Assembly: GCF_036588685.1 (NCBI RefSeq)
Contig: NC_086376.1
Coordinates: 45,074,001 to 45,138,000 of the forward strand
DNA: 64,000 bases
Direction of reading: 5' to 3'
DNA from: Mytilus trossulus
Taxonomy: Eukaryota
Positions 29,043 to 57,734 of this stretch are shown here, piece by piece. The position numbers and the translations under genes were made by a program. The notes under the pieces were generated by a model. That model did no database searches and was not told where the DNA came from. It was given only the letters and a program-made list of their open reading frames with translations. Every line of letters starts with the position of its first letter. The first letter of the stretch is position 1.

Positions 29043-29644
29043 GTACAATACAATACAATACAATATTTTATTAACGTCTCACCTTTTACAAAGCAATACA
29101 TAACACTTTGATTAAAACAAATTACACATATGTAAAAGCCATTCATATAGAATTATGAGAGACGATTATTTACAAATTCGAAACAAATTTCACACCGCTT
29201 AAAACATCAAATATATATATACTAAAAAAAATAATTTAAAAATATAAAAAAATTAAAAATTAAAAAACAAGCAAATACAAAACTATCTACATGTATATAA
29301 AAATCTACGTCTCCTATCTAAAATGTCTCTGCAGGTTTTGGCACACAAACGTATATTGTTAACACCACATAGAATCACAGATAGCTTATCTTGACTAGAA
29401 AAATTATCAAAACCATCAATATTTAAAGTATTAAAACAACTGTCCCTAATATCATCATACAGTGGGCAAAATAAAAGTACATGTTCTTCGTTTTCAATGG
29501 AGTCAGGACAGCAAAAGCAAGTTCGTTCTAGCAATCTTAGGTTCTCGTATCTCCCGGTCTCGACGCGAATTGGCGCTACTCCACACCTAAACTTAGCGTA
29601 AGCACTTCTGTACGATGTTGGCATGTAGTAGAACGTAATCAGAG
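29043..29644 (-). mobile_element. 3'-terminal LINE fragment with (ATTGT)n tail (duplicate at 32612-33213)
   Basis: ORF RSAYAKFRCGVAPIRVETGRY...CFCC...EEHVLLFCPLY is a LINE ORF2 C-terminal zinc-knuckle-like region. AATAAA and a short tandem tail follow at 29043-29072. Confidence 0.85.
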
Positions 29645-31409: not shown

Positions 31410-34400
31410 CTGATCTGTGTCCACACTTGTTAACATATAATATTGTTTTACAATGAATGTTATGTATAACAGTATAAGCAAGGAGGTTGTATAATTTCCT
31501 TGGTATAGGCAAAGTTGGTCCAATTTAGTCCGACGGTTCAATAGTAAGTATGACAGTTCGATTGTCCGACGGTTCGATAATCGACAGGATGACACATTAA
31601 AATAAAAGTCGAGGGTCATAAATATTTCCATATTCGGCCCTCTGTCACAGGGTGGTTATTCTGCCCTTTCAAACCATTTAAAAATTTCTTAGCTATTTCT
31701 CTTTTCATTCGCAAATTAACGGGCATGGTCGGAAGATAGATTCCTGGCTGCTGTACCGCATTAGCAATGATTGAGGTGTTTAAATATATTCAACGATATA
31801 TGAAAGATGGCATATTTTGAATTAATATTGATTTACTAATAGTACCCTTGCATCGGAAATAAACACATCTATTCTAAATAAATCATTAAAGATGGCCTTT
31901 TTTTTATTATTAATTATATTGATTTACTAATAGGGACTTTTCTTCTAAACTAAGCACATTTATTCTAATCATTAAAGATGGCATATTTTTGGAATTAATA
32001 TTGGTTTACACATAGGGTCTTTGCATCGCGGGAAATCAACACATTTATTATAAAACCAGTTGTTGACATGGCACGGTTTTGTGACAGTTCTCTCATATTT
32101 TATGATAGTATGATACTAAACCCCTAACATAAATGATTGTGCTCGATATGCACATGATGAAGACATAATTTTTCAATCAGTGTAATTGAGGTGTGAGGCT
32201 TGCGTGTCAGTAACTGACGTAACAGCTAGTAAGCCTTTGTTAATGTATGTATCATTGTCACTTTGCTTAGTTTTTTTTGTTGCGTTTACTGGCATTGGAC
32301 TCGGACTTCTTTTAATTAAACTGAGTTTTACTGTGCGTATTGCTGTGTGATAATAAATAAGCTTTATTTAGAGTCGGCAAGGTATACAAACATAGACAAA
32401 AATAAGCTCTAATTAGCTTTTAACAAACATGATTGTTTATCCTCATTGACTTGAAGTATAAAAGGGGGACCGGGTTGAGATCTCACTAAACATGTTAAAC
32501 CCCGCCGCATTTTTGTGCCTATCCCAAGTCCGGAGCCTCCTTCCTTTCAAGTGTTAGTCTTGTATGTGTGGGGTTTTTTTTTATTTACTCTGATTACGTT
32601 CTACTTCATATGTACAATACAATACAATACAATATTTTATTAACGTCTCACCTTTTACAAAGCAATACATAACACTTTGATTAAAACAAATTACACATAT
32701 GTAAAAGCCATTCATATAGAATTATGAGAGACGATTATTTACAAATTCGAAACAAATTTCACACCGCTTAAAACATCAAATATATATATACTAAAAAAAA
32801 TAATTTAAAAATATAAAAAAATTAAAAATTAAAAAACAAGCAAATACAAAACTATCTACATGTATATAAAAATCTACGTCTCCTATCTAAAATGTCTCTG
32901 CAGGTTTTGGCACACAAACGTATATTGTTAACACCACATAGAATCACAGATAGCTTATCTTGACTAGAAAAATTATCAAAACCATCAATATTTAAAGTAT
33001 TAAAACAACTGTCCCTAATATCATCATACAGTGGGCAAAATAAAAGTACATGTTCTTCGTTTTCAATGGAGTCAGGACAGCAAAAGCAAGTTCGTTCTAG
33101 CAATCTTAGGTTCTCGTATCTCCCGGTCTCGACGCGAATTGGCGCTACTCCACACCTAAACTTAGCGTAAGCACTTCTGTACGATGTTGGCATGTAGTAG
33201 AACGTAATCAGAGATCAATATTTTAATTAGATTGGACCCCATAAAGTTAAATGGTTGCTCCCTTAAGTTAATTATATAATACGTGTCTTTGTCTTTCAAT
33301 ATTTTTTTTCTTTTGGGATTACCAAATAGAGGAGAAAGATACCAAAGGGATTGTCAAACTCTTAAGTCGAAAATAAACTTAAAACGCTAATTAAAAAAAA
33401 GACAAACCGACAAACAACAGCTAAAAAAACACAACATAGAAGACTAACGACTTAACAACACAAACCCAACCAAACACTAGGGTTGCTACGGAAGGGTGAC
33501 CAGGTCCTGTTCCGCACGTGGCACCCGTCGTGTTGCTCATGTTAGTACAAACTCTAATTGACTTAATATAATTCAAATTCTGTATAAAAAAAGAAGAGAC
33601 GATATTGATGTTAATATTACAATTAGAACATATTTGGCTGCTATCATCTTTGAAACGGATATTCTGTAACGGTCAACCAACTCGTAATGGCATCCATACA
33701 ATTCACGGTGGGTATGGTTGTCCTGCGAGAGAACGTACTGTGCTGGTGATTTGGTCCTGACGGGTGCTGGTGGGTCCTGATTCTGTGCTGGTGGGTTTGT
33801 TTACATTGTATCAGAACGGCAATAAAACGACTGTTTTGTTGCTTAATTGTTCTCTGATGTGTCATAAGTACCATGCAAAGTATATTACAATAATATTATA
33901 TTGTAAAAGTCGTGCAAGTTCGTTAAACGGAATTGTCCTGACGCTGTGCTGGTGATAAGAAAAAAGGTCCTGGTTCTGTGCTCCTATGTCCTGGTTCTGT
34001 GCTTTTATATTTAGTTAAAAGTGACATATATTCAAGATCATTGATGCTGTACTGTTATTGACTTATTAGCTGTTGTCTGCTTTCTTGAAATTGACATTGT
34101 TGTGAATCTGTTTACTGTTATTATGAGAGAAAAAATACCCCTATTTTTATTTTATTTTTTAAAACTAACTTTAATCTTATTTATTGGCCTGTTAATGGGA
34201 CCCTTCTTGCCCCCTTTTAAGATAAGAAAATATGTTTACGATTTTCGGGATTACTATCATTTTGCAAGATCACCAAAATACGTGGTAATTTATACAATAC
34301 TTATATAAAGTAGATGATGTGGTATGTTTGTTGTCAATGGACAAATCTCCATAAGAAACCAAAGGAAGTATGTGTGAACAACCATACGTCATCGTACGAC

Positions 34401-37900: not shown

Positions 37901-38815
37901 AGTCATTCTAGTCATATTTAGTCCAAAACTTTTACAAATAAAGCAATTTTGTTTTCTTTTTGACACTTCTGTGTCCTTTATATCTTATTTTACGGAATGG
38001 GACTGATTAATTTTGCTCATGGTTGAAAGTCGTACGCTATGGTGTTGCTAAAATAACTTTACTTTTGGTATTGGGTGGAAAGTTGTCGTTTTGGCAATAA
38101 TAACCAATCAATCTCCTTTTCATAATGTAAAATGCATTGTTCGCAAGTAAATGTCATGGAAAAACAAGGATATTGAAAAAGTTGTTTATTTTTTACTTTT
38201 TAATTCTCATGTGTCTCCTTGAAAAATATACAACTTTCTAAAGTATTCTCCACAAGTGTAAGGCTTTAAGTTCGATAATGTCACAGTGTACTTCAAATGT
38301 TTTTGTTATTAGGAAACTTTAACTTCAAGCCCTGTGATAAAATAATAATGTAAACTTCGGCGTAGATACTCGTGAAATGTACAACAAAGCACTCCATTAA
38401 GAAATTTACATTTCAAATAATTTACTGAAATAACGCATTACTTGTCCAATAGTAACAAAGCAACATGAGCCAAATCGTCATTTTATCTTCTAGGATTAGT
38501 AACACAAGTCATTTTAATAATTCTGTTTTTAAACAATTTACACATTTAATTAACTTAAAACTTGATAAATACCAAAGGTCATTGTTGATATAGAAAGTTT
38601 CTCAAGCTGAGGACGATATCGACCTGATAAGCAACCAGTGGCTACAAACAAATACCAGAGTTCCCAGGGAAGGACATTCATCTTGGTATGATACATTGAT
38701 TCAAAATTTCTCTTACCTTTCATATGTTATATAAATATTTGTGCATCAAGTTTGTTGTTTTAACATCGGTCAAAGCTGTGGACGAAAGAGTTTACTTTTG
38801 ATTTAAAAACACACA

Positions 38816-40544
38816 ATGATAATTAAAACAGTATTGAGAATTTTATTTTTCACAATTCCATTGGTAAGTATATTTTAACGTATTTTGCACATATATATGC
38901 CAACGCACCAATTATTGTTAATTTTAAAGTTTTGCGATTTTCTAGAATTAAGAAAGTTAAAACGCTTATCTGTAGAATATTATTGTTTATTTAAACAAAC
39001 TTGGTTCTTATTAGATATATTTTGTATATTCCTGTCAAGCAAACATTTTGACCTTGAACATGTCTTCAATCGGCTTTATAAACTAATAATGACTACAGTA
39101 CTGATACAGCCTGCAACTTCTAATTGTATCTTGAGCTCCATTGTATTAAAACAATGCAAGTGCTGCTCATTTGAAATGTATTATTTCTCGTTTTAATTGT
39201 TTTACATTGTCTTATCGGGGCCTTTTATAGCTGACTATGCGGTATGGGATTTGCTCATTGTTGAAGGCCGTACGGTGACCTTTAGTTGTCAATGTTTGTG
39301 TCATTTTGGTCTTGTGTGGATAGTTGTCTCATTGGCAATCATACCACATCTTCTTTTTTATATTATAATTGTACGCTAGTGCTTTGTGTAATTGTATAGC
39401 ATGTACATCAAGGAAAATAATACCATATAATTGTTTTGCGTCTGACGCACTTTTCTTGATTAAGCTCGAATTGGAAAGCTGAAACACAAAACAAACTGGA
39501 AACCAATGGCCGGTTTATAATAAAACATAGCCTCCTTTCACGTTGAGACTGAAATCAAGCGAATGAAATACATTATGTATTAGGTGTTGTGTAGCTCTTG
39601 CATTATCAGAAACATTAGTATGAATAATGTCCCACAAAGAACTGTTCAGTGTAAGAAAATAACACACTTATGATCAATTATGTTCAAACTCCAAATATTT
39701 GTATAAAGTTGGTTATTTTCTTAATAATTGAATAAATATATTTCAAATTTCACAAAAAACTTACACAGATATATCGGGACATATTTTAAGACCGTTATAC
39801 ATATCACATTAAAAGTGCTTTAAATTTGTAGCTTGTGATTGTAAAAGAAATCAAGGAAAATTGACCGTGCTCATGGCTCAAATCAGATTTTAGTTTTTAT
39901 TTAAATCTTTTTTTGTAAAAGATCAAAATTTTCGAACTCTTAAAGGTTCAAGAATAAGTGAACCATCTTATGTTGACTGTTTTTTTTTTATTCTTCACTA
40001 TAATGACCTGAAAACTAAGAATGTTCAATAAACATTTTTGTAACGGTTATTGTGTTCGACCAAAATGTAATTAAGTTTTGTCTAATCAGATATAGACTTC
40101 ACCCTCCCTTCCACCTTACACCGACCTTCTTCCGTCTTTTTTCCCGAATATCTCAATGATAAACAAACAAGATAATTAATCTTATGGTTATCATGAGATA
40201 AAACACTAAATTTACCCATGATCATGTTTGTTATTGCTTTTATTCTTTAACAGGGACAAAATGCACAAACTACTTCATTCAAGGAAGTATTCACGGAGTT
40301 TGCTCTTGTTTTTATCCAACAAATTAAAGCAAATTCCCCTCAAGATTTTCATTTTCTCTTATATGATTTGAATCTTTCAATTGATTTGAAAAAACAACTT
40401 TGACTTGATTTCTAAAAACTGAAATCTGAAATACATGACCATTTATTTTACAAAGACTTAATTTAAACTATAATTGTTCAGACAGAATTGAAGAATGTTT
40501 ATAACAGGTGCTCAAAATTTCTTTGTGTTAAGATATCATAAACG

Positions 40545-40612
<68 letters not shown>

Positions 40613-43600
40613 ATGCTTAATATGGTTTTTTTTCTTTTTCTTTTCATTAATTTTAGATATGATTTAATTGTTTTGAAATGAATACAAATGTTCTCACTTA
40701 TTTTTATCGTCGTCTGTTATTTGTGTACGTAGTGGATTTTTTTCTTATATCTTTTGCTACGCGTTATCAGAGTCTTTGAAATGCATAAATTTCGTTTTTT
40801 TCTTTAGCTCAAATAAAAACTGAAAACAACATTTTATAAAAAGCCATTCGAATTCGTCTGATGCGCTTTTCTGAATTTAGTTCCAGCAGAACGCTCAAAG
40901 CCGGACAAGCCAATGGTGTATCATTTGAAGAGCATTATGACCAAAAATGACTAATCAGTGAAAATTCCCTTTGTAAAAGCATGGAATTGTAGTATGACTA
41001 CCAATGAGACAACGATCTACATAAATTAAAATGAAGTGGTTGTAAGCAATTATAGGTAACCGTACATGCATACACACGGAATGTAAAATGCATTTTTCTT
41101 GATTTTCAGTTAATAATAATAAGAAGGGACAGGCAATTACGTAAGATATACAGAACAACAAAAAATTAGGATTAAAATTCCTACAAAATTAAATGACGAG
41201 AAAAAAATACCCAAAATGTAAGCCTTGATATTGCGACGCCCATTATCTTATATATCTTATGTATGTCAGTCGATTTATCTGTATTTATTTTCGGATAAAC
41301 TTCTTTTTCAGTTACTCAAAACTTCATAAATATAGAGATTAATTAGGTATAAAGTAAGTAAATAAAGTCGACTGTCTGTAAAAGGAATTCAAAGTAAGCA
41401 GGTTTAATTTGCGTCCGAATGGGATATGTGTAATAAATGACTGTGCTATTACTAAATAGAATGATTGAAGACTTAAAATGCACTTTACGGTTTTATAGTA
41501 AGTCTTTAAAGACGTCTTCATAGCATAATTACAAACAGATAAGATATGATGGTAAACTTATTACTCTTAGCTGCAAATTATTTTATCAACGCAAAGCATT
41601 GACATGTCATCCTTTTTGCTAAAAGTTGTAGCTTCAATTGAAGTTGAGATTTTTTTATTTTTTTATACCCTTCTATAGAAAACCTCTACAATCAAGTCTT
41701 TTTTTTTTCTTTTTCTTTCTTCAAAAAATAGCAATGTGATTTTTTTAAATAAAGCAACACTTAAAAATAATCATATCGCCTTCTTACAAAATCCACGTCA
41801 TGTGGACTCTAGCTAGGGTATGGATAGTTGTCTAATCGCCCTCTTAAAAAATATACGTCATTTAAACTATAGCTAGGGTATGGATGATTTTCTAATCGCT
41901 CTCTTTCAAAATCCACTTCATTTGGACATAGTTAGGATATGGATAGCTGTTTAATCGCCATATGACATAAATTCATGTCATTTAGAATGTAGCGACGATA
42001 TGGATAGTTATCTACGTGCCCTCTAACCAAATCTGTGTCATTTGAAATATAGCTATGATATGGATAGTTGTCTAAACGCCCTCTTACAAAATCCATGTCA
42101 TTTGGACTTTAGCTAGGATATAGATAGCTGTTTAATCGCCGTCTAACAAAATCTGCGTCATTTGGACTCGAAGTATGATATATATAGTTGTTTACTTGCC
42201 CTCTAACAAAATCCGCGTCATTTGGACTGTAGCTATGATATGGATAGTTTTCTATACGCCCTCTTACAAAACCACGTCACTTGGTCTTTAGCTAGGATAT
42301 GGATAGCTGTCGCCGTCTAACAAAATTCATGTCATTTAGATTCTAGCGAGGATATGGATAATTGTCTACTTGCCCTCTAACAAAATCCGCGTCATTTTGA
42401 CTCTAGCGAGGGTATGGATAGTTGTCTAATCGCCCTTTAACAAAACCCACGTCATTTGGACTCTAGCTAGGGAATGGATAGTTGTCTAACACCCTCTAAC
42501 AAAATTCACGTCATTTTGGACTCTAGCTAGGGAATGGATAGTTGTCTTACACCCTCTTACAAAATTCACGTCATTTGGACTCTAGCTAGGGAATGGATAG
42601 TTGTCTAACACCCTCTTACAAAATCCACGTCATTTGGACTCTAGCTAGGGTATGGAAAGTTTTCTAATCGCCCTCTCACACAAAATCCACGTCATTTGGA
42701 CTCTAGCTCTAGGGTGTAGATTGTTGCCTTAACAACATATAACAAAACCCACGTCATTTGAAACTCTGGCTAAGGTATGGATGGTTTGCAATTTTCCTCT
42801 AACAAAATCAACTTCATTTGGACACTAGCTAGGGTATGGATTGTTGTCTAATCGCTCTCTCACAAAATCCACGTCTTTTGGAATCTAGCTAGGATATGGA
42901 TGGTTGTCTAATCTTCCTCTAACAAAATCCAAATCATTTGGACTCTAGCTAGGATATGGATGGTTGTTTAATATTCGTCTAACCAAATCTTCGTCATTTG
43001 GACTCTAGCTAGGGTATGAATTGTTGTCTAACCACCCTCTAACAGAATTCACGTCATTTGGACTATAGCGCATGGATAGTTGTCTTAACACCCTCTTACA
43101 AAATCCACGTCATTTGGACTCTAGCTAGGGAATGGATAGTTGTCTAATCGCCCTCTAACAAAATCCACGTCATTTGGACTCTAGCTAGGGTATGGATAAT
43201 AGTCTAATCGCCCTCTAACAAAATCCTCGTCATTTTGGATTCTAGCTAGGGTATGGATAGCTGTTTAATCACCCTCTAACAAAAGTCATGTCATTTGGAC
43301 TATAGCGCATTGATAGTGGTCTAATCGCCCTCTCCCAAATTCACGTCATTTGGACTCTAGCTAGGGTATGGATAGTTGTCTAATCGCCCTCTAACAAAAT
43401 TCACGTCATTTGGACTCTAGCTATGGTATGGATAGTTGTCTAATCGCCCTCTAACAAAATTCACGTCATTTGGACTCTAGCCAGGGTATGGATATTTGTC
43501 TAATCGCCCTCTAACAAAATCTACGTCATTTGGACTCTAGCTAGGTTATGGATAGTGGTCTAATCGCCCTCTAACAAAATGCACGTCATTTGAACCCGAG

Positions 43601-46600
43601 CTAGGGTATGGATAATAGTCTAATCGCCCTCTCACAAAATTTCACGTCATTTGGACTATGGCGCATATATTGTTGTTTTATTGACAATAGTAACACCATC
43701 ATCAATCTTCTTATGTCATACTGTAATATCAAGACAACACAAACAAACATACACGCAATGGTAAATAAAATGCCATACATATAATCAAACACAGCCTACC
43801 CCCCTATGATGAACTCGCAACCCGTTTCTTTTCAAGATTAGTACAAGTATATGAAGTCTTTATTAATTTCACATACTTCGTATTTAGATATAGATATGAT
43901 TTGTACCAGAGACATATGTAATGTCCCTATACTATACCATGCCTCTGTTTGTACTAACAAGAAACAAAAGCTTCTGTTTCTATTTAGCAACGGTATCTAT
44001 AAATTTTACTTCAATGACAATGACACAATTTTATAACTACTGAATAAATGATTAATTGCAATGTATTGTTTCAAAATGTTATGTTGCTACACTTTTAGTC
44101 TTTATAAAGATCCATGTTCTGAACATAAACAAAAACTAAATTTTCATTTTCGATCACCTTTTCATCAAACTTTTTTCATTTTAGTTATACAAAACAATAT
44201 ATGAAGGTTTTTTTGCCGTTCAGACTCTTTTGAAATTTGAATTGCTTTATTGTTTGAATAATTATGTATGTTACAGTTCTGGAATGACGATAAAAAAAAT
44301 ATCAGAAATGCCCACTTTTGTTTTGAAATTAATAAGCTGTAAAATAAACAACTCTTGCATAAGTTTTGTTTCTATTGAGTAGTTCCAAATCAAAACAAGT
44401 ACTTTTTTTCGCGTTGTTTGTTGGTTCGAGGTGTATATTCACTTAAGACACTAATTTTCATCTAAACAATGGCCTTCAATTCAAACATTTTCATATCAAT
44501 ATTTTCAATTTGTTCTCGGATTTGAAAATATTACTAGATGATAACTATTCTAAACATACAGAAAATGTAAATATTAACGTGGGTGTTTTTGGTGGTTGTA
44601 TTGTATCACATTGATATCACCAGGGAGGGATGAATATAGGTTAGCACTTTGGTTTAAGATCGAATGTACAAGAGGTCGGACAGCTATTATAACGAAAAAA
44701 GGGACTGGCAAGTATAGGAACATTTGCACATTTGCAAGAATATATTGCACCGACTGTGAATATATATCATGCATCTTCATACTTTTCGTGGTATTTAATA
44801 TAAAATGACGAGTCTTTTGTAGACGAAACGCGCATCTGGAGTGAAAACAATACTAAAATTTCAATCCTGGAAACTATGATGAATTTATTTACAGGTACTG
44901 AGTCGATGCCACTGCTGATGAGGTTTTTATTCCCCGAGGATATCACCAACCCAGTAGTCGACACTTCTGTGTTCACATTAACTAACATTGATATGGTCAT
45001 ATTTATAAATCAACTGTTTACAAAATTTGGATTTTTGAAATGCTAATGATTTTCTACAACAGTTGTAGATTATCTTAGCTGTGAAAACTTTTGGCAAAAC
45101 TTTAAGAACATTTGGTCCTCAATGCTCTCCATTTCGTACTATGTTTGGCCATTTTAACCTTTTTTTATTAGAGCGTCACTGATGAGTCTTTTGTAGTCGA
45201 AACCCTCATCTAGAGTAAATGCAAAATGTCAATCCTAGTATTTATGATGAGTTTACTCAGTTGTCCAGTCATGTTACAGAGCTGATAATTTGGACAGACA
45301 TTAAAAACGTTGGCCAAACGAGGGCCAAACATTGCTTCATTTTTTTATAATCTGAATAATAATGGGATTAGTTTTAGGTTTGATAAATAAAAATCATCTC
45401 TAACTAAAAGCTCACCAGAAGTGATCTTCGTCTGTATATAAGCCTAATAATCTGCGCTCGTACCAAAACAGTTGGAATTTCTAAACTTAAACAAGTTTTA
45501 CGGTTGAAAAGAAAGAAATTAAAAAATAATCATTTATGCATTGGGAAAACCTTAGTGATAACTAATTTTAACATTTTGTGCGCAGATTATTTATAACAAA
45601 TGACCTCATCCCAGCTCTTGAAGTGTTTACTACTGTGCCGCTGCGCTGGTGTTTCCATTTGGGACGGTTACTTTACCAGCAGTTTCACCAACCGTTTACT
45701 CAAGGAAAAAATCACTAAAATGATAATTGTCATACTAGTAACCAAAACATAGCTACTCTGAAAAAGAAGCATTTTTTTTTCTCTAAATTTCATTTTTTAT
45801 AATGTTCAATCAAGTTCTAATTGTCCCTTTTTGCATACACTTGACATGTACATATATAACTGACAAGTCAATGAAAATGTACAATGATTATCTAAACTGA
45901 AGGGTCGTCCAAGTAGAGTTGAAGCATACTGATTACCCGAACAACGAGTACATGTCAGTGTTATTTAAACTTTCCTTTCGTTTCATCTTTAGATAACCAT
46001 ACACATGATCTGATAAAATTGTTTAATAATAAGAATAAATATATGAGACATTTTTAATTTAGATCTTTTGAATTATTCTTTCACACGATAATTAATTTAA
46101 ATATAACGTTACAGACATTGACTCATTTCTTTCTCCCTCTTCCTTTTACGAGAAGATTAACAAGGAAATTAAAACAGGATGATGTCTTCTACATTAATTT
46201 TGTACGTTTAAAATCAAACAAAACATTACAAACATACTGCACTTGATAAACTGGTGACAAAATAGAACTCATCAATGTTTGGAATTTCTCCTTGAGACAC
46301 TATATTGAATATTAGTCGACAAGAAACGTTTCAGATTTATTATCAATAATGTAAATAAATTATTATATATCTTTATTTGCAAAACATACAAAAAACAAAT
46401 TTGGTTGTGGCAAATACATTGACAAACAAACATAATGAAACATAATGAAAACTCGACAATATTATAAGAAATATGATAAAAACAGTTACTGTTCTCCTTT
46501 CCTCTGTTCTAATGACTCTTTAAGGTAGCACAATACAAAGATTTTATAACTCCAACTCCCACGTTTTAAAATGTTGTAACTTTCTTAATAATGCTTGCAA

Positions 46601-49600
46601 AATTATATAAATTATAGTTTTGGATAGCTATAACAGATTACTCTTTCAAATTAATGCAATGTTAGTATTATGAAAACAATTATGTAACCAATTATAATTT
46701 TAACAGTGTCTAAAATATTTTCCCCCAAATTTCCACTTTCAAATGAATTTAGCTTCTTCATAGGTTTCCCTAGAGGGTTGATTTTATTACATGTTGTTCC
46801 TATGGCCATTATCTACAAAAGGGTGTCTCAGATTTCAGATAGAATGTATAGAACAAATTTTACACCTAATTAAACATTATCTTCTTTTATATGGTTAGGA
46901 TGTTTACACTAACTAGAGATTTATGAGAGAATGGAATACCATAGAGACAATCTGAGACACCCTTTTGAAGCCCATGATGTGTTGATTAAGATTTCGTTAA
47001 AATTTTCTGTATAGTATAAGAGACGATAGAGCTAAATTCATTCAAGTGAACTTACCTAGATTTTGCCACTAATTACGTAATAATTAATTACTAAATGATT
47101 GCATAATAAAAATATTGCATTCATTTAAAAGATTAAACTTTTATCTATCTATATATACCTCTTTTATTAATTTCTATGCATTCATAAGAAAGTTACAGCA
47201 TTTCAAAGGTTAGTGATTAAAAGTAAAAAAATCTTTGTATTGTGCTACATTAATAAAAGAAACAACTGCTTTTACATCATTTGGTGTTGATGGATTAAGT
47301 ATTATCACGAGTTTATCAGTAAAATTAAGTGTATTAAAATTTACATATTTTTGTTTATAATATTTTAGAAAGATTTCTCTTTTATTTTTATTTATTTTAC
47401 AGTTGAAGAAAAAATGAAATTCATAAATAACAATAAAAAAACAGTTGTGTACATTAACCCTCATTTGCAGCTGTAGGTTAAGGGGTTTTGTTTTAAACAG
47501 ATTAAATACGTTTTTAAATGATGTAAAGTTCTTAATTTATCGTTGAATAAAAACTGAATTATATACTGTGGATTCATTATAATTCGTGGGAAAACAATTT
47601 TCGTGAAGTTCGTAATCAAAGCTGTCGATACTAGACAGACAAAATGTTTATTTAGAATTTTCTTGATAGTCTTGAATGCATATTTAAATTTGTCATTTTT
47701 GTTTTTTTCGATCATCTCTTAAAACGTGTTGGCTTACCTGATTTAATAGACCGTTTTTACTTGTTTTTGTAAATATTATACTTCGCACTCATAATTATCA
47801 TTAATTGGTGAATTTCTCTTTTTCAGATAACTATTGCTTCCTCCGACAGCAAATTATATATCGGGTTTCTGGGATATTTGAATCCAAACAACACCGACAT
47901 AAGCGGAAATTGTTGTGATGGCACGAAACCACCATGTAATGCCTTATGTCACCTAATATTTAACGTCACGGTGCAGGGTAAATCAATGTAAGAACTTCTT
48001 TTTAAGTTCAGAATATTTATTTAAAAATGTATCTGTATCTGCACCAGCTTTGGCTTTCATTCAACAGGAGAGAGTGACACCTCTTGACGGTGTTGTAGAG
48101 CTGCCTTGAAGTTCTCAACTTTATTTACGCGACCAATTCTGTCTTCCAGTTGGTTCCTATATACATGTGCATGCTCGTGACAAAGAAAGAATAATTATAT
48201 GGATCCGTGTTGTATGGAATAGTGTATATTGCCTTCGTACTGTTCAGTGTTCAGAACTGAGTTTTTCGCTATATTGGCACTTTCAAGGTTATCAAATTTT
48301 GTCGGTTTGATTTTACTCTTATGTTTACTTTTAACAAGACAATCATTAGGATTAAAAGTCGGGGTCAAATTTTTAACCACTTTGTACAGAAATATCATCC
48401 GTTGACTGTAGATTGTTCAGCTCTAACTCGGCTAGTATTTTAGTAACCCTCTTCTTTAGACCTGTTATCGCCTGTTATGAACCTGGCTACATTCTTTCCA
48501 TACATTTCTTACAAACGATACATGTATTCTTTTTGCAATCTTTATAGCACAAACGTATATTTCTTCTTTTAAAAAAACATTGTTGATTTGGCTTTTTTGG
48601 CTACATTTGAGATGTGTGTAGTCCAGGTCTTCTGATATTTGCAATGTTTCCTGGTATCTTATGCCCATCCTTTGCAAGCCTATATGGATTATGCTGAACC
48701 TTTTGTAGTATGTGTTCTTAAATGCTGTATATGTTCTGGTTGTTGTTCTTAATGCTCGGAATATAGCACTTTTGCATTTAGGCGCATGTCCCAGTTTTTA
48801 GCCCATATTCTTAGGTGTGTGGTCATGTTATATTTTTATGTTCCTAATACCATATACAAAAAGTCTGACTGATGATTTAACTGCATCTGGTAGGTCGTTA
48901 ATGTGGCAAAGGAAGAGAACATTGTGTAACATCGCAACCAACTGGCAGTTTGTTGGTGGCATGGTGTTTATTGCTTTGGAGAAGTCACTGACAGCTACAT
49001 CAGTTTGTTTCGCTGCTGTGTTTAGGATTTCATAGAGTAGTAAAGTGAAACCATGTTTTAGTGATGTTTTAAATACCCTGAGGTTCACTACTTTTTTAAG
49101 CATATGTCTACATATAATTTGTTCTGTCAGCCTACATGGTACAGATGTTAAGGATACTGGTCTGTAGTGTTCTGGTGCGTGTTTTTCTCTCTTTTTAAGA
49201 CACTTGAGATGTTTGCATTGAGCCAGTCACTTGATAGTGTACCAGTATTTATGGATTATTGGAATATCAATGCAAGTCCAGGTGATACTTGTTTTAAGAA
49301 TATTTTTGATATAATGTTTGGTGCGCCGTCTGGTCCTGATGCCATTAATGTATTTATTTTTTTTAGCAACTTTTCAACTTCTTCCTAATTTATTTTCAGT
49401 ATATGTAGATTTTTATTGATAACTATGCATAACTTGTTTTTATCCATATAGTATAGTTAAGTCCATATATACTGCTTTGGTCATTTGAATATTTTCATTG
49501 TTTGTGGTGATGCTTTTTGTATAAATGATTAAAGTTCTACTGCAGAGTGACCTGCCAGATGATTGTCATAAATGATTATGTTTAATTTTCAAACCGTTTG

Positions 49601-52600
49601 TCGAGATTTTTCCTAAGCAGGACATTTTAATTCAAAGAGTAATTTAAAAGATCACATTATCATATTCATTGACCATAAAGATTTGTACTAGCTTATCAAT
49701 AGAAAATATATTAACCAACGTTTTATTTTATCAGTGAACAGCAAAGCCGTAAACTCTCCGCAAAACCAATAGAAAGCAGTGCCGCTGAGCATTTTCAGTT
49801 GAGTAACACAGACCCTGAAATTATTAACCCGCTTATGTTCACGTTTGGTACGTGGCCGGTGAGTTGAAATTAACATATAACCAGGAATCAGAACACTGCA
49901 CAGGGGCGGATGCAGGAATTTTCGAAAGGGGGGTGCTAACCCAGGGCAAAGGGGGGGTGCAAAACATATGTCCCGATACAAATGCAATGATCGGCAAAAA
50001 TAAAGGGGGGGGGTGCGCACCCCCGGAACCCCCCCTCTGGATCCGCCACTGCTGCATGAAGGAGACAATTCCTCAATTAAAAATATTTTCTAACATTTTG
50101 TAACAGCAAAATTTATAACAAAAAAGTCCGTATTTCATTCCAGTACCGAAGTACTGGTTACTGGACTGTTGAAACCCTCTGGGACTAACAGTACAAAAGG
50201 AATGACCAACACATATCTTCAAAGACACCTAACTTATGTTATAAATCGACAAACGCGCGTGTCATCTGAAAAAACAACCCAACACTATTCAGTAGCGTAT
50301 ACATCCAAATCGCTGGAAGACCAAATAAGTTGCCGTAAAAAAAAACATTATAGTGTTTCTAATGGTTTCAATATTCTATGAATTCTTAATCGATTATACT
50401 TTTATGTCTGCACCAGATTTCTAATCTGACAAGACATTCATTGGGATGAAAATTCAACCGGCAATAGTTTCGGCGTATCGACCCAGTTGTCGAAAAAAAT
50501 CGCATAGGATACCAGGCTTATTATAATTCAGTTATGGAAATAGTGTTTCGTCTTCAGATGACTCATAAGTTATTCTCTAATCCAAACAGATACAGACACA
50601 ATAGTTTCAAAGTTAAAGGATATCATAACAATAAAGACCCAACAGATTGTGTCGAATGCGGCTAGGGCATCTATGAATCGTGGTAAAAAAAATGAGTGTT
50701 TCGGACGTTTTTCACATTTGATTTTTTGATATTAAGTATACGCAGCTACTATTACATAGGTACTTTTTGCTGTACTAAAAATATGTAGTACTGGAAATTT
50801 ACTTTTAATATTTAGTTCTATTTCTTTACTTTAAAATTATTGTAATATTTAGGTACTTGTATTTTACAGTACTTGATTTGTACTAAATGTTTTGGTACAG
50901 AAATAATACAATATTCCATGTTTGAAAATTATAATTTTAAGAGATTTGAAATAGAAAACTTTCAAAATGCTGAAAATGTAACGGAAGTAACCAAAAATAT
51001 GCAGTACCTAAATTTCAAGTACAAATTATTATTAATAAGTACTGTAAAATACAGGTTCCTAAATATTACAATAATCAAAAGTACATTTCCAGTACTACAG
51101 ATTTTTAGTACAGAAATAGTACCTATGCAAAAGTAGACGTGTAAGAACCTGACTGATCCAATGATCTTTCACGTTAGCCTCTAGACTTGGGTTGCTAAAA
51201 ACAAAATCCAGCTTACCTTGTCATATACGGCGACGTGAGCTTTATAGAAAAATACTATTGTTGAATATCTATCACAATCTATATCATTATTTTTGTTATC
51301 TCCTATATACTTTATTTTCAACAGTATGAGGTGAATATAACGATCACAGTTTTTCATGACGACAACGGCGATGGAGGACAAAAAATTGTTGACAAATTTA
51401 CAGTTGCCTTAAATATTCAAAACCCATCTTGGCAGTATCATCATAAAAACGCTACTGGAACTAGATCTCATTCATTTTCTTTGTAAGTACTTTTCCGTTA
51501 GAGTATCACATTGGTAAATTTATTTGAAAGAAATGATAAATAAGGCACATTCATAACCACCTTCAAAAGACTCTTAAAAGATTTCTTTCACAAATGAATA
51601 AAGCATTGAAAATACGTAGGCTAAATGTAATCAAACTTTAAGAAACCATCAAATTTAACCTGCAGAAGTCAACAAATGACTTCAGTTATTGACAAACATC
51701 AACACCGTTTGTCTAGTTATAATGGCACCAGGTCTATTCGAGTTTTGAGTTTTATAATCCTGGTACCTTTGATAACTATTTGATATATTTCACAAAAAGA
51801 ATATCCCAGTTCCACAAAGGAACAAAAACTTATCTTATTCTTGCACAAACGGATTACTAAAATATTCTCATATTATATCAGCGGTCAATAAGCATGTGTG
51901 GGTCAAACAATACAGACGGAATACTAATAACTGGTAAACAGTTAGAGCAATTTGTTTTGGGCAACTGACAAATAATGAAACATTGCACCTTCAAAAAAGG
52001 CGCAGTTTATCAATTCAAAAAAATTAACTAATCTTTAAATCGAAGTTGTGTGTCTGTGTTTTAGAGAAAATTGACAAACAAATTATATCAAAGCAGTCAT
52101 AGTGAAGTTAAGAGTGATATAAAACTTTGTGAGTTCTAAAAGAGAACAAGAAATATTGGTTAATCATATAAAAATGCAACATACACACGTAAGCAAAGCT
52201 AACTGTCTCATTTTCTACAATTAATAAGAGGTAACCACAGATAAGGCAATAGCATAACACGAAACAATATAAATATAAGATGTGTTATGGATTTTAGAAA
52301 GAAAAAACATATATAGTTCAAATATATGGATTTCATTTATGGAAGCTCTAAAAGGAGTAAGCTTCCTTAACTAACCTCGAACCTATGCAAGTTGTTAAAG
52401 AATTCACTTATAAGGTCTTTGGATTAAAAAAAATAAACACATTTATTCTAAAACCAGTTGTTGGCATGATACGGTTTATGTTCTTCTCATATATTTTATG
52501 ATGGTATGATACTCAACCCTTCATGGGAGGGATTGTGCTGCTTGATATTTATATGATTTAGACATAATCTTTCAATCAGTTTAATTGAGGTCTAAAGGTA

Positions 52601-55600
52601 GAATGTCAGTGACTGCTAGTTGTCCTTTGTTAATGTATGTATTATTGTCATTTTGGGGTTTTATGTTTTTTTGTTACCTATTCTGGCATCGGACTCGGAC
52701 TTCTTTTAAACTGAGTTTTACTGTGTGCTTTACTGTGCGTTTGTTTTTGTTGGATGATGGTTGAGATCTCCAAAAAACATGTTTAACCCCGCAAGTCAGG
52801 AGCCTTTGTAAATCTTGTATGATTTTTAATTTTAGTTTTTTTAATATATTTCGGAGTTTAGTATGACGTCCATTTTGGTCCTCAAAGCTTTTCAACTTCG
52901 TACTTTATTTGGCCTTTTTTATCTTTTTGTTGGATTCGAGCGTCACTGATGTCTTTTGTAGACAAAACGCGCGTCTGGCGTATATACAAAATTTAGTCCT
53001 GGTATCTATGTTGAGTTTATTTATCACTGAACTAGTACACAGTTTGGTTTAAGGGCCAGCTGAAGCTCGCTTGTGGGTGCAGGATTTTTTCCCGTTGTAT
53101 TGAAGACCTATTGGTGGCTCTTTGGTCGGGTTGTTGTCTCTTTGACACATTCTCTATTTCCATTCTCAATTTTATGTAAAATTGGATGGCAAGTCATAGA
53201 TATTTGTGTTTTGATTTTTTTTCTCTTTTCTAGATTGAGTATGATATTTCGTTATGAATGTTTGAAGCCAAAGGAAAATGACAATGGATGCTTTAGTAGG
53301 GACTGTGTATTACACCAAAACGAAACGGAATGCCTTGATATCCTGCAACCAAACAATCAAGATAACACAACTGATATTGTGTTACAAACAACACCAAGCC
53401 CTTACGAATGTGAGCGTTTTGAAGTTCCAAATATCGGAGAGTTTCTGAATTGCACAAGTCAAATGACCGATACAACAGAACAAGTAACACAAGAGATAAC
53501 TACGCAAATGAACATTGAAGAAACAACCTTGTCAAATGAAATTACAACACATTTAGATAAACAAACAGACTCGGTAACGACAACAAAACCAACCGATGAG
53601 AAAAGCTCAACAATTACAACAGATATACCTACCAAAGAAACTTCTTCAGTAATCCCAGAAACTACACATACAGACATCTCTATAACTTCACAAAATTCAA
53701 ATTCAAAAGTAACGAGTGATATTGTGAAACATCATACGTCAGTTAACAGTGTAACGACAAATGAAAAACACACGTCTTTTAAGTCATCTACAAACTTACC
53801 ATCGACAAAACAAATTTCAGAAAGTACCAGTAAATCAACTACTGAGTCAATAAAAACATTTATGTCATCAACGCCGACAAACTCGTTGACAATTCTTGTT
53901 TCTACAAAAGATATGAATAAAACTGGAATACCAAGTGGTCCAGGTGTAGTAAGCAGTCCTCCAACGCATTCTACCGACATACCAGATATTAATACAACGA
54001 TAAAAGAAACAAATAGTGGACCAATGAAATACTGGCCTGGTATAGTTGGGGGAGTTTTAGGAGCTTGTGTAGTGGTTGCTGTAGTTTCTTACATAATATA
54101 CAGTAGAAGAAGAAGGTGAGTAAAATGTGGAGAAAATGATGATCACGTGTATCTGTTATGTAAAGATTTTCCTTGGTTGGAAATATTGAAGTATTTGTAT
54201 CGAAACTTGGCATCTATATATTTTAGACAGTACTAAGCCGAAATGAGGAAACATAAAAAAATGTTTATGATAGAAGATTATTTTTTTTATAAAATAGCCT
54301 AAAAAACTATATTGGTTGATTAAAAAATATATATGTTAATCTGTTTTTATAAATTTCCTGTTTACAAAACTTTGAATGTTTCGAAAAACTAAGGATTTTC
54401 TTATCCCAGGCATAGATTACCTTAGCCGTATTTGGAACAACTTTTTGTAATTTTGAATCCTCAATGATCTTCAACTTTGTACTTGTTTGGCTTTATAAAT
54501 ATTTTGATATAAACGTCACTGATGAGTCATGTGTAGACGAAACGCGCGTCTGGGTACTAAATTATAATCCTGGTATCTTTGATAACTATATACATCGACC
54601 GAAATTGTTCGAACCCCTGCTTCTATGACATCGTGGCAACACCACATCCACTGTGTCGAGCGCCATAAACTATTTCTCGAACTACTCAATAAACTGTAGC
54701 TTTCGTTAGTCGAAAACGAAAACAGTGCATAATTGTCTGGTTGTTCGTTACTTACAGATAGACAATACTTGACTAATGACAGATATATAGATAAAGGCAC
54801 CAGTAGTATACCGCTTTTCAAATGTCATAAGTCGATTAAGATAAATTAAATCCGAGTCGCAAACCAAAACCGAAGGACACACATTAACTTTCAGAGAAAA
54901 AACAACGAAATAACAGAAAATCTGGACTGTTATTAAAACAAACGAACTACATGTATGTGACATGTGTGATAACAACTATTACATTCCTGAATTGGTACAT
55001 GACATTACACTATAACATACTGCATACTAGTACCCATACTTTCAACAGTCACTCCACTGGTACGATATAATATTTTCAGTAATACACAGGAAATACCCAA
55101 TGTAAATGAGGACTCAAGTAAGTAGTATGTTAGTGATAACATTGAGAATGGAAATGGGGAATGTGGCAAAGCGACAACAACCTTACCATAGAGCAGACAA
55201 CAGGCAATTAAAAAACCTATGAATGACCGTCGCTGTTAACCAGACCTGCCTAGTATATCAGGCGACACTTGTGTACACTTAGATACCCTAACCACACGAT
55301 CACAGTGTCTTTAATTTTTGTTCTTTTCTAAAGATTGCCAACCTCTTTTCATTTTTATATTCATTAAAAGTAAAATATGTTTTTTTGTAGAATGAATAAA
55401 AGAAATAATGATATATACAATGTGAACCCGAAAAGATGGGTGCTTGAACCTCCAGAGGAGAATGGCACATCTGGAAAATCAGAAATAGCATTGGAAACTG
55501 AACAAGTTTGAGGATGAAAGAAGAACAAAACACTTTCTTATCAACTGTGATATGTTTCTGTGCTGAGGTACACAATTAGCACTGAGATTGCGAGGGCACT

Positions 55601-56157
55601 AGTGTGACCATTATATCATAAGGTCAAAAATTTGGGAGTAAAGTTTAAAGTTGGGCTAATGGTGTTTTTCAAATACAAATATCAAACCAATAAAAATGAA
55701 AATAATGTAACTATCAATTTTTAAACAATAAAAAATATTTTATGAAATATAATTATAATTCATTAAGCAGGCTAAACAGAATAACTTATACTTTCTTTGC
55801 ATACATGACACCAGACAAAAACCTTCAAATAAGGGAAAAGTTCGACAAACAACTCAATTATAGAATGTAAGCAATTTCTGTAGAAACAGTTCATTACAAA
55901 TATATAACTAGTTTTTTAATACTATTGGAAACATTTTGAAAAGCAAGTACAAGATAAATGAGAATCTACCATAGAATTTTTTGCTGCTCATATTACTATG
56001 ATGAAATCAGAATTCACTCTAAACTCTGCTATTAACTTTGAAAATATATATAATTTTTTTATAGACATTTTTAATTGTTTTCACATGAATTTTACACCCT
56101 GTTTGTTTTTAAATTAATATAGCATTATATTTATCTCATGAGAGAATACCATTTTGA
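38816..56157 (+). CDS. Notch-ligand-related type I membrane protein (~480 aa): signal peptide, MNNL/C2 domain, divergent 6-Cys module, Ser/Thr mucin-like stalk, TM helix, short tail
   Basis: Exons 38816-38863 (MIIKTVLRILFFTIPL), 47827-47987 (YLNPNNTDISGNCCDG...C...C), 49735-49858 (NPLMFTFGTWP), 51325-51482, 53234-54115 (LSMIFRYEC...TM YWPGIVGGVLGACVVVAVVSYIIY) and 55080-55117 are all GT-AG and in phase (0,2,0,2,2,1). The last exon, 56123-56157, is tentative. Confidence 0.78.
40545..40610. repeat. (ATT)22 microsatellite
   Basis: Read directly. Confidence 0.95.
41776..43665. repeat. 60-bp tandem satellite, about 32 copies
   Basis: Consensus ATCGCCCTCTAACAAAATCCACGTCATTTGGACTCTAGCTAGGGTATGGATAGTTGTCTA. 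The 5' copies are more diverged. Confidence 0.95.
44805..45256 (+). mobile_element. Full retrozyme-like monomer bounded by two degenerate hammerheads 374 nt apart
   Basis: HHR1 at 44805: ATGACGA-GTC-ttttgta-GAC-GAAA-CGCGCA-TC. HHR2 at 45179: CTGATGA-GTC-ttttgta-GTC-GAAA. The sequence after each motif is repeated. Confidence 0.75.
46524..47249. mobile_element. MITE with ~22-bp TIRs and TTAA target site (Kolobok-like)
   Basis: TTAA|GGTAGCACAATACAAAGATTTT ... AAAATCTTTGTATTGTGCTACA|TTAA, with an internal inverted pair aaaagggtgtctcagatt/aatctgagacaccctttt. Confidence 0.7.
48200..49450 (-). pseudogene. Degraded LINE reverse transcriptase
   Basis: Remnants YRPVSLTSVPC, DVAVSDFSKA and LFLCHINDLPDAVKSSVRLF, with deletions and stops. 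Confidence 0.75.
49901..50051. mobile_element. 151-bp GC-rich MITE (hAT-like CAG...CTG ends)
   Basis: CAGGGGCGGATGCAG ... CTGGATCCGCCACTG imperfect TIRs, flanked by CTGCA on both sides. A related fragment lies at about 18953-19000. Confidence 0.7.
50741..51141. mobile_element. Foldback/MITE with long imperfect inverted arms rich in GTAC
   Basis: 'cataggtact...ctgtactaaaaat.tgtagtactggaaat' is mirrored at about 51075-51135. Confidence 0.7.
52874..53022 (+). mobile_element. Retrozyme fragment with inactivated hammerhead, nested in the 52430-53175 repeat
   Basis: gagcgtca-CTGAT--GTC-ttttgta-GAC-AAAA-CGCGCG-TC-tggcgt. Stem I is intact and the core is mutated. Confidence 0.65.
54513..54555 (+). 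ncRNA. Minimal type I hammerhead ribozyme with intact catalytic core (in retrozyme repeat about 54340-54590)
   Basis: CTGATGA 54519-54525; stem II GTC/GAC; GAAA 54539-54542; C-GCGC-G palindromic stem III; GUC cleavage triplet 54548-54550. Stem I is shortened by a 1-nt deletion relative to the 52937 copy. Confidence 0.82.
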
Positions 56158-57734
56158 AGTTATGAGTTTATCGGTGGGAAAAAAGTATCCGATGTCCTCA
56201 TCAAAACACGCATCAGATTCATTATACTAGTAACCTTTAATGACCTCAAAAATCTCACATTTACAAGGGGATTAAAAGAGGAATATTTAAAAACAAACAA
56301 TTGAAGGTCAATAATATATTTGCGATAATGTATACTGTCATTTATATTTGAATAATTACATTGGATGTATGTTTCATTATAATGCGTTATCCTGATTGGC
56401 TAACAGCACATCACATGTTATTCCGTAAACAATTGCATGAGACAATAACATTTATCATGCATGATGACACGAGATCCCACAATAAAGTGCACAGGTGAAT
56501 TAAATAAAACTGGATAAAAATCGTGTTTTCATGATCCTAGCTAAAAAAATGTAATTATAAGTATTGAATGCTTCTTTTTGTAACTTTATAGGGTTGTAAA
56601 TGCGTTGACCGTGCGTACATTTTTAGAATGTGTGTTTTCATTTATTTATTCAAATTTTGGTCATGCACATATTAGCCGTATCATTACAACAGAGTCAAAT
56701 AAACGACATTTTGCTGTTTGCGATTGGCCTGATCGGCTTCCGCATCTTTCAGTAGTCAGCATTGTGAAACGGTAGCAATTTCTGTATGACTTTTTTAAAA
56801 GTAGATTTTTAAGTATTTTTTATGATGCTGTACATTGCGCTTGTATATTTTTTCGATAGTAAAAAATCAGAACCTTTATACTTTAATATGTCGCTGGCGA
56901 TTTTAACGATTCTGGTTGAATTATTTATTTTATTCAAATTGCATTTGTATTTTATGTTTATGAAAATCGATTATAAAATTATGCTAGAATATCATTCAGC
57001 GCGTTATCATTGAATCAAAATTCAATACTTAGCAAATAAATTAGGTCAGTTCAAACTTTAAAAACAATAATCGTTTTGTATGTGACAGAAGCATGAAATG
57101 TAAACAGATGCTGTAACCATGGTAACCGAACTTGCATATTATCGGTTGTGTGTGTATCCATCAAGCTAAGACTAATATTAGTAAAAAAAAGTCTCAGCAT
57201 CAAGGATTACTGTATCATGATCTTTCAAAATATTTGTAGTATTCATCTGTAAATTTTCATAATTATATTGTTTTGAATTAATCATTTTCATTAAAATGTA
57301 TTTTTAAATCATATTGCTTTATTTATTTTACGTGTATGTAAAGACAAATGATATGGAAACGTATGATCTATGGGTACTCACTAATCACATGGTATTATGC
57401 TTTCCTCGTGTTATGGGTTCTGGTTAGCCGAGTTGCAATGTATTCGAACTAATATAATATGTTGATACCGTATGCCTGTTATGTAGTACAGACGTCCATA
57501 TCGTCCAAACTCTGAATTTGGAAAAGAAGTTACTCCATAAACATACATCGTCTGGCTGTCCTGGTAAACATGGTAAACGACGCGCATCAAGAATTTGGTT
57601 TTTGAACAAAGTATTTCAACCACGATACTGTCGATTCTGAAATTGCAATTATTCTACTTTACTTGCATTCAATACTAAGTATATACTGACTTAACTGTTT
57701 ACAAAACTTCGAATTTTGAAATGCTAATGCCTTT

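Follow-up and report, generated by a model that had tools for sequence, protein, structure and literature searches.

A single-copy gene on the forward strand of the 64-kb window analysed here (the whole stretch of Mytilus trossulus DNA, a piece of contig C4 of the 1.3-Gb Mytilus genome) is expressed, comprises six exons, and encodes a 497-residue type I membrane glycoprotein. Its N-terminal domain is, by sequence and predicted fold, a C2 domain of the kind that heads the Notch ligands Delta and Jagged, also known as MNNL. This domain is followed by the relic of a DSL domain and is carried on a mucin-like stalk, without the epidermal growth factor (EGF) repeats of the canonical ligands. The C2 domain and the ligand family from which it stems are familiar; what is new is this combination, conserved in two classes of molluscs. 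Confidence is high in the gene model, in the architecture, and in the homology.

The gene and its Notch-ligand C2 domain

Read from the sequence, the coding sequence spans 38816-55511 (+ strand) and holds 1494 nt, that is, 497 codons plus a TGA stop, with GT..AG splice sites and good polypyrimidine tracts at every intron. A preliminary description of this DNA, drawn from its letters, had proposed six exons, all in phase; the number stands, and the introns follow one another in phases 0, 2, 0, 2, and 2. Exon 1 (38816..38863) carries the ATG and the first 16 residues of the signal peptide, ending at a GTAAGT donor, and exon 2 (47827..47987) encodes the end of the signal peptide, C2 strand 1, the CC-x6-C-x3-C loop, and strand 2 (YLNPNNTDISGNCCDG...LIFNVTVQ). 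Exon 3 (49735..49858) holds a shortened, cysteine-free strand 2-3 loop and the NPLMFTFGTWP motif, while exon 4 (51325..51482) contributes C2 strands 5-7 with the acidic strand 5-6 loop (FHDDNGDGG) and an invariant VD. Exon 5 (53234-54115) opens with the last C2 strand (53234..53261), LSMIFRYEC, which ends at the first cysteine of the DSL relic and matches the Y-R-F/V-x-C of solved ligands, and remains a single open frame throughout. The motifs quoted in the preliminary description are all found on the + strand: YLNPNNTDISGNCCDG (YLNPNNTD...NCCDG) at 47875, NPLMF/FGTWP at 49826-49858, and LSMIFRYEC at 53235. The intron right after WP is likewise present, with the GTGAGT donor following 49858 immediately.

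RNA contigs were examined over 47820-53819 in four public runs, which come from three studies and carry two organism labels. In each of the four, a single contig joins 47987>49735, 49858>51325, and 51482>53234, all at GT..AG, covering both junctions of exon 3 and of exon 4; such contigs can only derive from spliced RNA. No further piece of the interval 47820-53819 stands between the exons in the contigs of these four runs, and the introns within it are devoid of RNA cover except at a few very abundant repeats. Since exons 2 to 5 are joined directly in RNA, no extra DSL or EGF exons lie between the exons of the C2 domain and that of the stalk. In run X3, the spliced contig reaches 84 nt upstream of exon 2. 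For exon 1 and the exon 5>6 junction, the evidence consists of canonical splice sites and of the match to annotated Mytilus proteins (15/16 residues identical in exon 1 and 38-39/39 in the exon 6 tail); the junction is also backed by the presence of the tail in all full-length relatives. A scan for AATAAA at the 3' end was uninformative in this AT-rich DNA. Within its own genome, the gene has no paralogue detected in searches with exons 2, 4, 5, and 6: exons 4, 5, and 6 match only themselves, and exon 2 is weakly similar to canonical ligand loci on contig C1.

Full-length searches and fold predictions were made with P0001, the database orthologue from M. galloprovincialis (LOC143072334, "uncharacterized protein", 506 residues, 87-96% identical to the window gene and sharing 15/16 residues of its N-terminus with exon 1), and the exons of the window were searched singly. 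Against the Pfam MNNL profile (PF07657, gathering cut-off 22.5 bits), P0001 scores 19.1 bits (E=9.5e-4) over residues 33-158 and profile positions 11-147 of 157. Exon 2 alone gives 15.6 bits (E=0.012, profile positions 10-45), and exons 3 and 4, pieces too short when scanned singly, give no MNNL match. The cut-off is passed by relatives from Pecten (24.3 bits), Saccostrea (27.7), Littorina (28.8), and Nucella (28.8). A phmmer search of the PDB with P0001 returned only a weak match to DLL1 (E=0.43). A profile built from mollusc family members only, with no canonical ligand among them (A2), when run against all PDB sequences retrieved fly Delta (7alk, 2.4e-10), DLL1 (4xbm, 8.6e-7), JAG1 (4cbz, 9.2e-6), and DLL4 (5mvx, 1.6e-5), with nothing besides Notch ligands below E=0.3. 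In line with this, the weakest matches of a phmmer search of the whole protein library, P0035 and P0037 (E about 3-5e-4), are bona fide Delta-like proteins with MNNL, DSL, and EGF domains.

Structure prediction points the same way. AlphaFold2 was run on two alignments, one including canonical sequences and one restricted to family members, and both models present the same beta-sandwich over residues 22-176, with a predicted local distance difference test (pLDDT) score of about 90; the last C2 strand, residues 165-175, reaches about 95. Every one of the 13 best hits from Foldseek is a Notch-ligand C2 domain. With VIA-align, the family-only model is closest to fly Delta (7alk, Z 16.0, 2.2 Å over 142 aligned residues), followed by DLL1 (4xbm, Z 13.7) and Serrate (7alt, Z 13.4), while no generic C2 domain exceeds Z 12.7. 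In addition, four cysteines of the strand 1-2 loop, C45, C46, C53, and C57, are invariant in 15/15 family sequences and align with those of canonical ligands. The family-profile matches and the fold searches thus identify the N-terminal domain as a C2 domain of the Notch-ligand type, as the preliminary description had recognised from its motifs.

An artefact, whether a Delta or Jagged gene mis-assembled or mis-read so that its DSL and EGF exons escaped notice, or a pseudogene in decay, would suit short, widely spaced exons in a repeat-rich, AT-rich region and a Mytilus protein that falls under the Pfam MNNL cut-off when scored alone. We consider it scarcely credible, and rejected both the ordinary ligand with missed exons and the pseudogene: spliced contigs join exons 2 to 5 directly in four runs, exon 5 keeps one reading frame open all the way from the last C2 strand via the stalk to the membrane helix, the window yields no DSL domain at E<=10, the + strand over the gene shows no EGF-like cysteine pattern, and the same architecture recurs in more than 15 mollusc genera.

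A mollusc family with a DSL relic

Searching 1.84 billion representative proteins by phmmer gave 34 matches at E<=0.001, and a profile word search added two genera; a word-index protein search with the C2 region returned Mytilus proteins only. Among bivalves, members were found in Mytilus, Pecten, Argopecten, Saccostrea, Mactra, Mercenaria, Ruditapes, Dreissena, Potamilus, and Solemya, and among gastropods in Littorina, Nucella, Babylonia, Gigantopelta, Plakobranchus, and Elysia. The full-length members share one architecture, consisting of a signal peptide, a C2 domain, a few cysteines, a Thr/Ser stretch, a transmembrane helix, and a tail, with total lengths of 393-789 residues and a stalk that varies widely in length. 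The C2 domain is marked by G-x-[LF]-[FY]-V-G-x-L-x-[YF]-x-N ... CCDG ... C-x3-C-x-L-I-F-E-V, NP-x-x-F-x-F-x-x-W-[PT]-G, V-D-x-F, and L-x-x-x-F-R-Y-x-C; the membrane region by P-M-x-Y-W-P-x-I-V-G-G-V-L-G leading into the helix; and the tail by R-Q-[DE]-I-Y-x-V-x-P ... E-E-N-G-T-[ST]-G-[RK]-S-[DE]-[IV] ... E-T-E-Q-[VYI].

Judged by these sequences, the family is an old one, spread across Bivalvia and Gastropoda and not confined to a species or genus. The suggestion of a lineage-specific derivative made in the preliminary description therefore has to be amended, and a Mytilus-specific novelty was rejected on the orthologues across bivalves and gastropods. No members outside molluscs turned up, although searches of this kind cannot prove absence. 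In databases, the members are named "uncharacterized", "hypothetical", or automatically, for example "mucin-2-like" in the oyster and "delta-like protein d" in one sea slug, and no published description of the family was found in the literature searched.

Behind the C2 domain lies a Cys-rich segment (53259..53453) in which C-x9-C-x4-C-x8-C is followed by two more cysteines at spacings x25 and x13. The six-cysteine pattern C-x9-C-x4-C-x8-C-x25-C-x13-C had been described correctly, as had the lack of YYG, RPRDD, and GW.G in Mytilus, but the first four cysteines are nevertheless related to DSL. In scallops, Solemya, and sea slugs, the corresponding segment reads C-[DS]-x-x-Y-[YA]-G-x-x-C-x-x-x-C-x(8-9)-C, matching the canonical C-D-E-N-Y-Y-G-x-x-C-x-x-x-C column for column, and the A2 profile alignment runs on into the DSL domains of fly Delta, DLL1, JAG1, and DLL4. 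Of the DSL cysteines, the family retains only C-x8/9-C-x3/4-C-x8/9-C; YYG is kept in scallops and Solemya and lost in Mytilus, the most eroded member of the family. Because the segment of the relatives aligns with the start of DSL, the family has kept the first two DSL loops, and, on this alignment, the four cysteines that come first after the C2 domain are what remains of these two disulfide loops. The Cys-rich segment is of low confidence in both AlphaFold2 models (pLDDT 30-45).

The rest of the DSL domain is missing. The RPRDD contact stretch and the third loop with GW.G are absent from the mollusc family, and no member matches Pfam DSL or EGF at E<=1. A genome-wide six-frame scan with DSL (PF01414) found none in the 64-kb window at E<=10, while placing a DSL exon beside each of seven other MNNL loci, and no EGF-like cysteine pattern occurs on the + strand over 38000-57000. 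Together with the RNA contigs, these scans bear out the absence of a canonical DSL domain and of EGF repeats noted in the preliminary description. The C2 domain has changed as well. In canonical ligands, a disulfide from strand 2 to the long strand 2-3 loop stabilises site 1, which binds Notch EGF12 (PMC5538765). Both cysteines of this disulfide are present in the canonical mollusc proteins P0025, P0033, P0035, and P0037 and absent in every family member, where the loop is about 5 residues shorter. The absence of the DSL contact motif and the loss of the site-1 disulfide, both read from sequence, argue against canonical Notch engagement, and the protein probably does not activate Notch in the canonical manner.

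By its sequence, the family goes back to a Delta-type Notch ligand from which the EGF repeats and most of the DSL domain have been lost. The genome holds seven further loci with MNNL plus DSL, or six distinct ones if the locus on C42 is a duplicate haplotype of that on C3. Indeed, C3:9938868-9965367 and C42:1973601-1991865 have near-identical scores and equal exon spacing, and C42 probably carries either a second haplotype of the C3 ligand gene that was not collapsed or a recent copy of that gene. Contig C1 carries three Delta-like loci with MNNL and DSL (C1:3655829-3666271, C1:3691496-3703813, and C1:53881962-53888697; L005-L007, L019), two of which lie in tandem at a distance of about 36 kb. 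All three have an intron directly after C2 strand 2; in L005 and L019, the two of the three that were read, this intron is in phase 2 and at most 1 codon from the position of the intron ending exon 2 of the window gene. Exon 2 is 43% identical to one of the C1 Delta-like loci. In the four strongest ligand loci, MNNL profile positions 1-100 lie within one exon. These features hint, on thin evidence, that the family arose from the C1 Delta-like subgroup.

Such a descent invites the alternative that the protein modulates the Notch pathway, as a cis-inhibitor, a decoy, or a weak trans-ligand, through its C2 face and DSL relic. Derivation from a Delta-type ligand can be demonstrated, one sea-slug member is automatically named "delta-like protein d", and vertebrate DLL3, with a degenerate DSL domain, acts only in cis, which offers an analogy. 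The canonical C2 domain moreover supplies binding site 1 for Notch EGF12 (PMC5538765). We nevertheless regard this role as rather unlikely. F-C-RPRDD, the third loop with GW.G, and any Pfam match to DSL are lacking, and in Jagged-1 the single DSL change F207A abolishes Notch binding (PMC3888931). The site-1 loop is without its disulfide and about 5 residues shorter, and EGF1-3 are gone. Besides, all seven MNNL-plus-DSL loci are still in the genome, leaving no evident need for such a role.

Conservation pattern and proposed function

The Thr/Ser-rich, mucin-like stalk (53454..54020) comprises about 190 residues, 39% of them Ser or Thr, with many N-x-S/T sites, and is predicted to be disordered (pLDDT about 30). 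It is followed by the juxtamembrane PMKYWP, a transmembrane helix with GGVLG, which we take to be a small-xxx-small motif, and an RRRR stop-transfer (54021..54115, donor AG/GTGAGT). An AlphaFold2 helix over residues 436-476 (pLDDT about 90) covers the membrane span, and P0001 has a match below threshold to Pfam TM_ErbB1 (E=3.4e-5). The stalk and the helix are as the preliminary description had them. The tail, which it had called very short, is indeed short compared with that of Delta; it is, however, no mere stub. The stop at 54117-54119, right after RRRR, is part of the donor GTGAGT, and the tail therefore continues in exon 6 (55391..55511), which encodes …NDIYNVNP…EENGTSGKSEIALETEQV and ends in TGA. 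The result is a conserved module of 44 residues, SRRRR plus 39 from exon 6.

Conservation is unevenly distributed along the protein. Between P0001 and the window gene, exons 2 and 4 are 96% identical, exon 3 and the Cys-rich part about 92%, the stalk 89%, the transmembrane segment 100%, and the tail 38/39; the transmembrane segment is 31/31 identical in both M. galloprovincialis and M. coruscus, and the exon 6 residues are 39/39 identical to M. coruscus P0003. Among Mytilus species, the C2 exons are 88-96% identical and the stalk, at 71-89%, is the least conserved part. Over the whole family, the invariant positions are the four loop cysteines, F108, W111, D135, the four relic cysteines, W440, G445, and G449 in the membrane region, and Y476, P480, N-G-T, and the C-terminal threonine, the tail motif being kept from bivalves to gastropods. 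The C-terminal E-T-E-Q-V/Y presumably resembles a PDZ ligand, and we assume that the invariant Tyr can be phosphorylated.

These proportions bear on whether the protein could be a membrane-tethered mucin, a component of the glycocalyx, a barrier, or an anti-adhesive coat, with the C2 domain as a folded cap devoid of specific recognition. A 190-residue stalk with 39% Ser+Thr and many N-x-S/T sites would fit, as would the name "mucin-2-like" given to the oyster member and the highly variable stalk length among members. Yet the stalk is the least conserved part, whereas the C2 core, the relic cysteines, the transmembrane helix, and the tail are kept from bivalves to gastropods, and we judge the mucin explanation improbable. 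With C2, helix, and tail conserved around a variable spacer, the sequence pattern is therefore the one expected of a receptor with a head for binding and a partner inside the cell, and not of a bulk mucin.

We favour, with fair but by no means firm confidence, a role as a stalk-presented receptor for membranes or lipids that signals through the conserved transmembrane helix and tail, a proposal based on sequence and analogy. The stalk would hold the C2 domain off the cell surface, so that the apex loops, namely the CC-C-C loop and the acidic strand 5-6 loop, may touch the membrane or lipid of an apposed cell or particle. Occupancy of the C2 domain would then be relayed via the conserved helix and tail, with its Tyr, NGT, and PDZ-like end, to partners in signalling or endocytosis.

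The C2 domain of Notch ligands was reportedly recognised only in 2013, and, to our knowledge, its lipid binding has so far been understood only as a tuning of Notch activation. Liposome binding is established for the C2 domains of Jagged-1, DLL1, and Serrate, and in the case of Jagged-1 it needs Ca2+ held by D72 and D140 (PMC3888931). DLL4, which has His-123 at the position equivalent to D140, binds no Ca2+ and binds lipid without it (PMC5538765). Taking the Asp ligands D140/D144 of the strand 5-6 loop as the mark of Jagged-type Ca2+ binding, we found Asp at the D140-equivalent position in 10/14 family members and in M. coruscus.

Several observations weigh against the receptor proposal. In the window species and M. 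galloprovincialis, the D140-equivalent residue is His, flanked by three Asp (FHDDNGD); as this is the situation of DLL4, Ca2+-dependent lipid binding by the window-species copy is uncertain. The Mytilus protein, taken alone, lies under the Pfam cut-off for MNNL, and the motifs of its tail match no curated family.

A bolder extension of the receptor proposal, which we put forward only tentatively from sequence and analogy, is that molluscs have retained, over the entire history of bivalves and gastropods, a receptor family whose C2 domain was freed from Notch signalling and may serve as a stand-alone lipid sensor for cells, apoptotic bodies, or microbes, coupled to a Tyr/PDZ-ligand tail. It would be the first extracellular C2 domain acting alone. 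If true, this C2-on-stalk sensor would parallel the TIM-type phosphatidylserine receptors by convergence. A conserved family with the C2 domain and without the Notch-binding DSL and EGF parts amounts to a natural separation-of-function experiment on the ligand C2 domain. It also provides a new candidate cell-surface receptor for mollusc biology and documents the remodelling of a core developmental ligand into a different kind of protein.

Other elements of the window and comparison with known systems

Very abundant repeats occupy 52820-53220, 51620-51819, and 49820-50219 (introns 3 and 4) in all four RNA-type runs, with a summed contig depth of up to about 72,000 versus 6-60 for the exons and with recurrent back-joints from ~52982 to ~51752. 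They are probably a highly transcribed element, SINE-like (resembling short interspersed elements), tandem, or circular; Rfam gave nothing convincing on the abundant repeat of intron 4. Over 38000-57000, Rfam likewise returned nothing at gathering level, and intron 5 holds a sub-threshold type I hammerhead ribozyme (RF00163) at 54516-54553 (+), scoring 25.5 bits against a gathering threshold of 34 (E=6e-4 in a 551-base search). Upstream of the gene, 6308-11053 (+) encodes a 1581-residue frame with features of gag zinc knuckles, protease, reverse transcriptase, RNase H, and integrase, and is a largely intact long terminal repeat (LTR)-type, BEL/Pao-like retroelement. Two identical 113-residue open reading frames at 29283-29624 and 32852-33193 (-), 3569 bases apart, point to a recent duplication in tandem or to a mobile element present twice.

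Among known systems, the closest are the Delta, Serrate, and Jagged ligands (7alk, 4xbm, 4cbz, 5mvx), which are likewise type I membrane proteins with an N-terminal C2/MNNL domain. Both share the CC-x-C-x-C loop, NP-x-x-F-x-F-x-x-W-P, the acidic loop between strands 5 and 6, and the L-x-x-x-[FY]-R-[YF]-x-C strand that runs into the first cysteines of DSL. The mollusc protein differs in keeping only a four-cysteine relic of DSL, with no Notch-contact motif and no EGF repeats, in having a mucin stalk instead of the EGF rod, and in the loss of the site-1 disulfide. Its 44-residue tail is unrelated to the tails of the ligands and short compared with that of Delta.

DLL3 offers an earlier example of a protein derived from a ligand that has ceased to activate Notch in trans. 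This vertebrate relative of Delta has kept MNNL, and its DSL domain is degenerate or unrecognised (PMC12166595). DLL3 nevertheless retains EGF repeats and works within the Notch pathway, while the mollusc family has a mucin stalk and no EGF. DLK1, DLK2, and other non-canonical ligands are truncated relatives of the DSL ligands and single-pass membrane proteins. DLK1 and DLK2 keep EGF repeats without MNNL or DSL; the mollusc family presents the reverse, MNNL without EGF.

The TIM phosphatidylserine receptors bear no relationship to the mollusc protein in sequence or fold, since the TIM head is an immunoglobulin V (IgV) domain and the mollusc head, whose lipid binding is putative, is a C2 domain. 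The analogy is one of architecture only: a TIM receptor, too, carries an N-terminal lipid-recognition head on a Ser/Thr mucin stalk, above one transmembrane helix and a short tail with a conserved Tyr.

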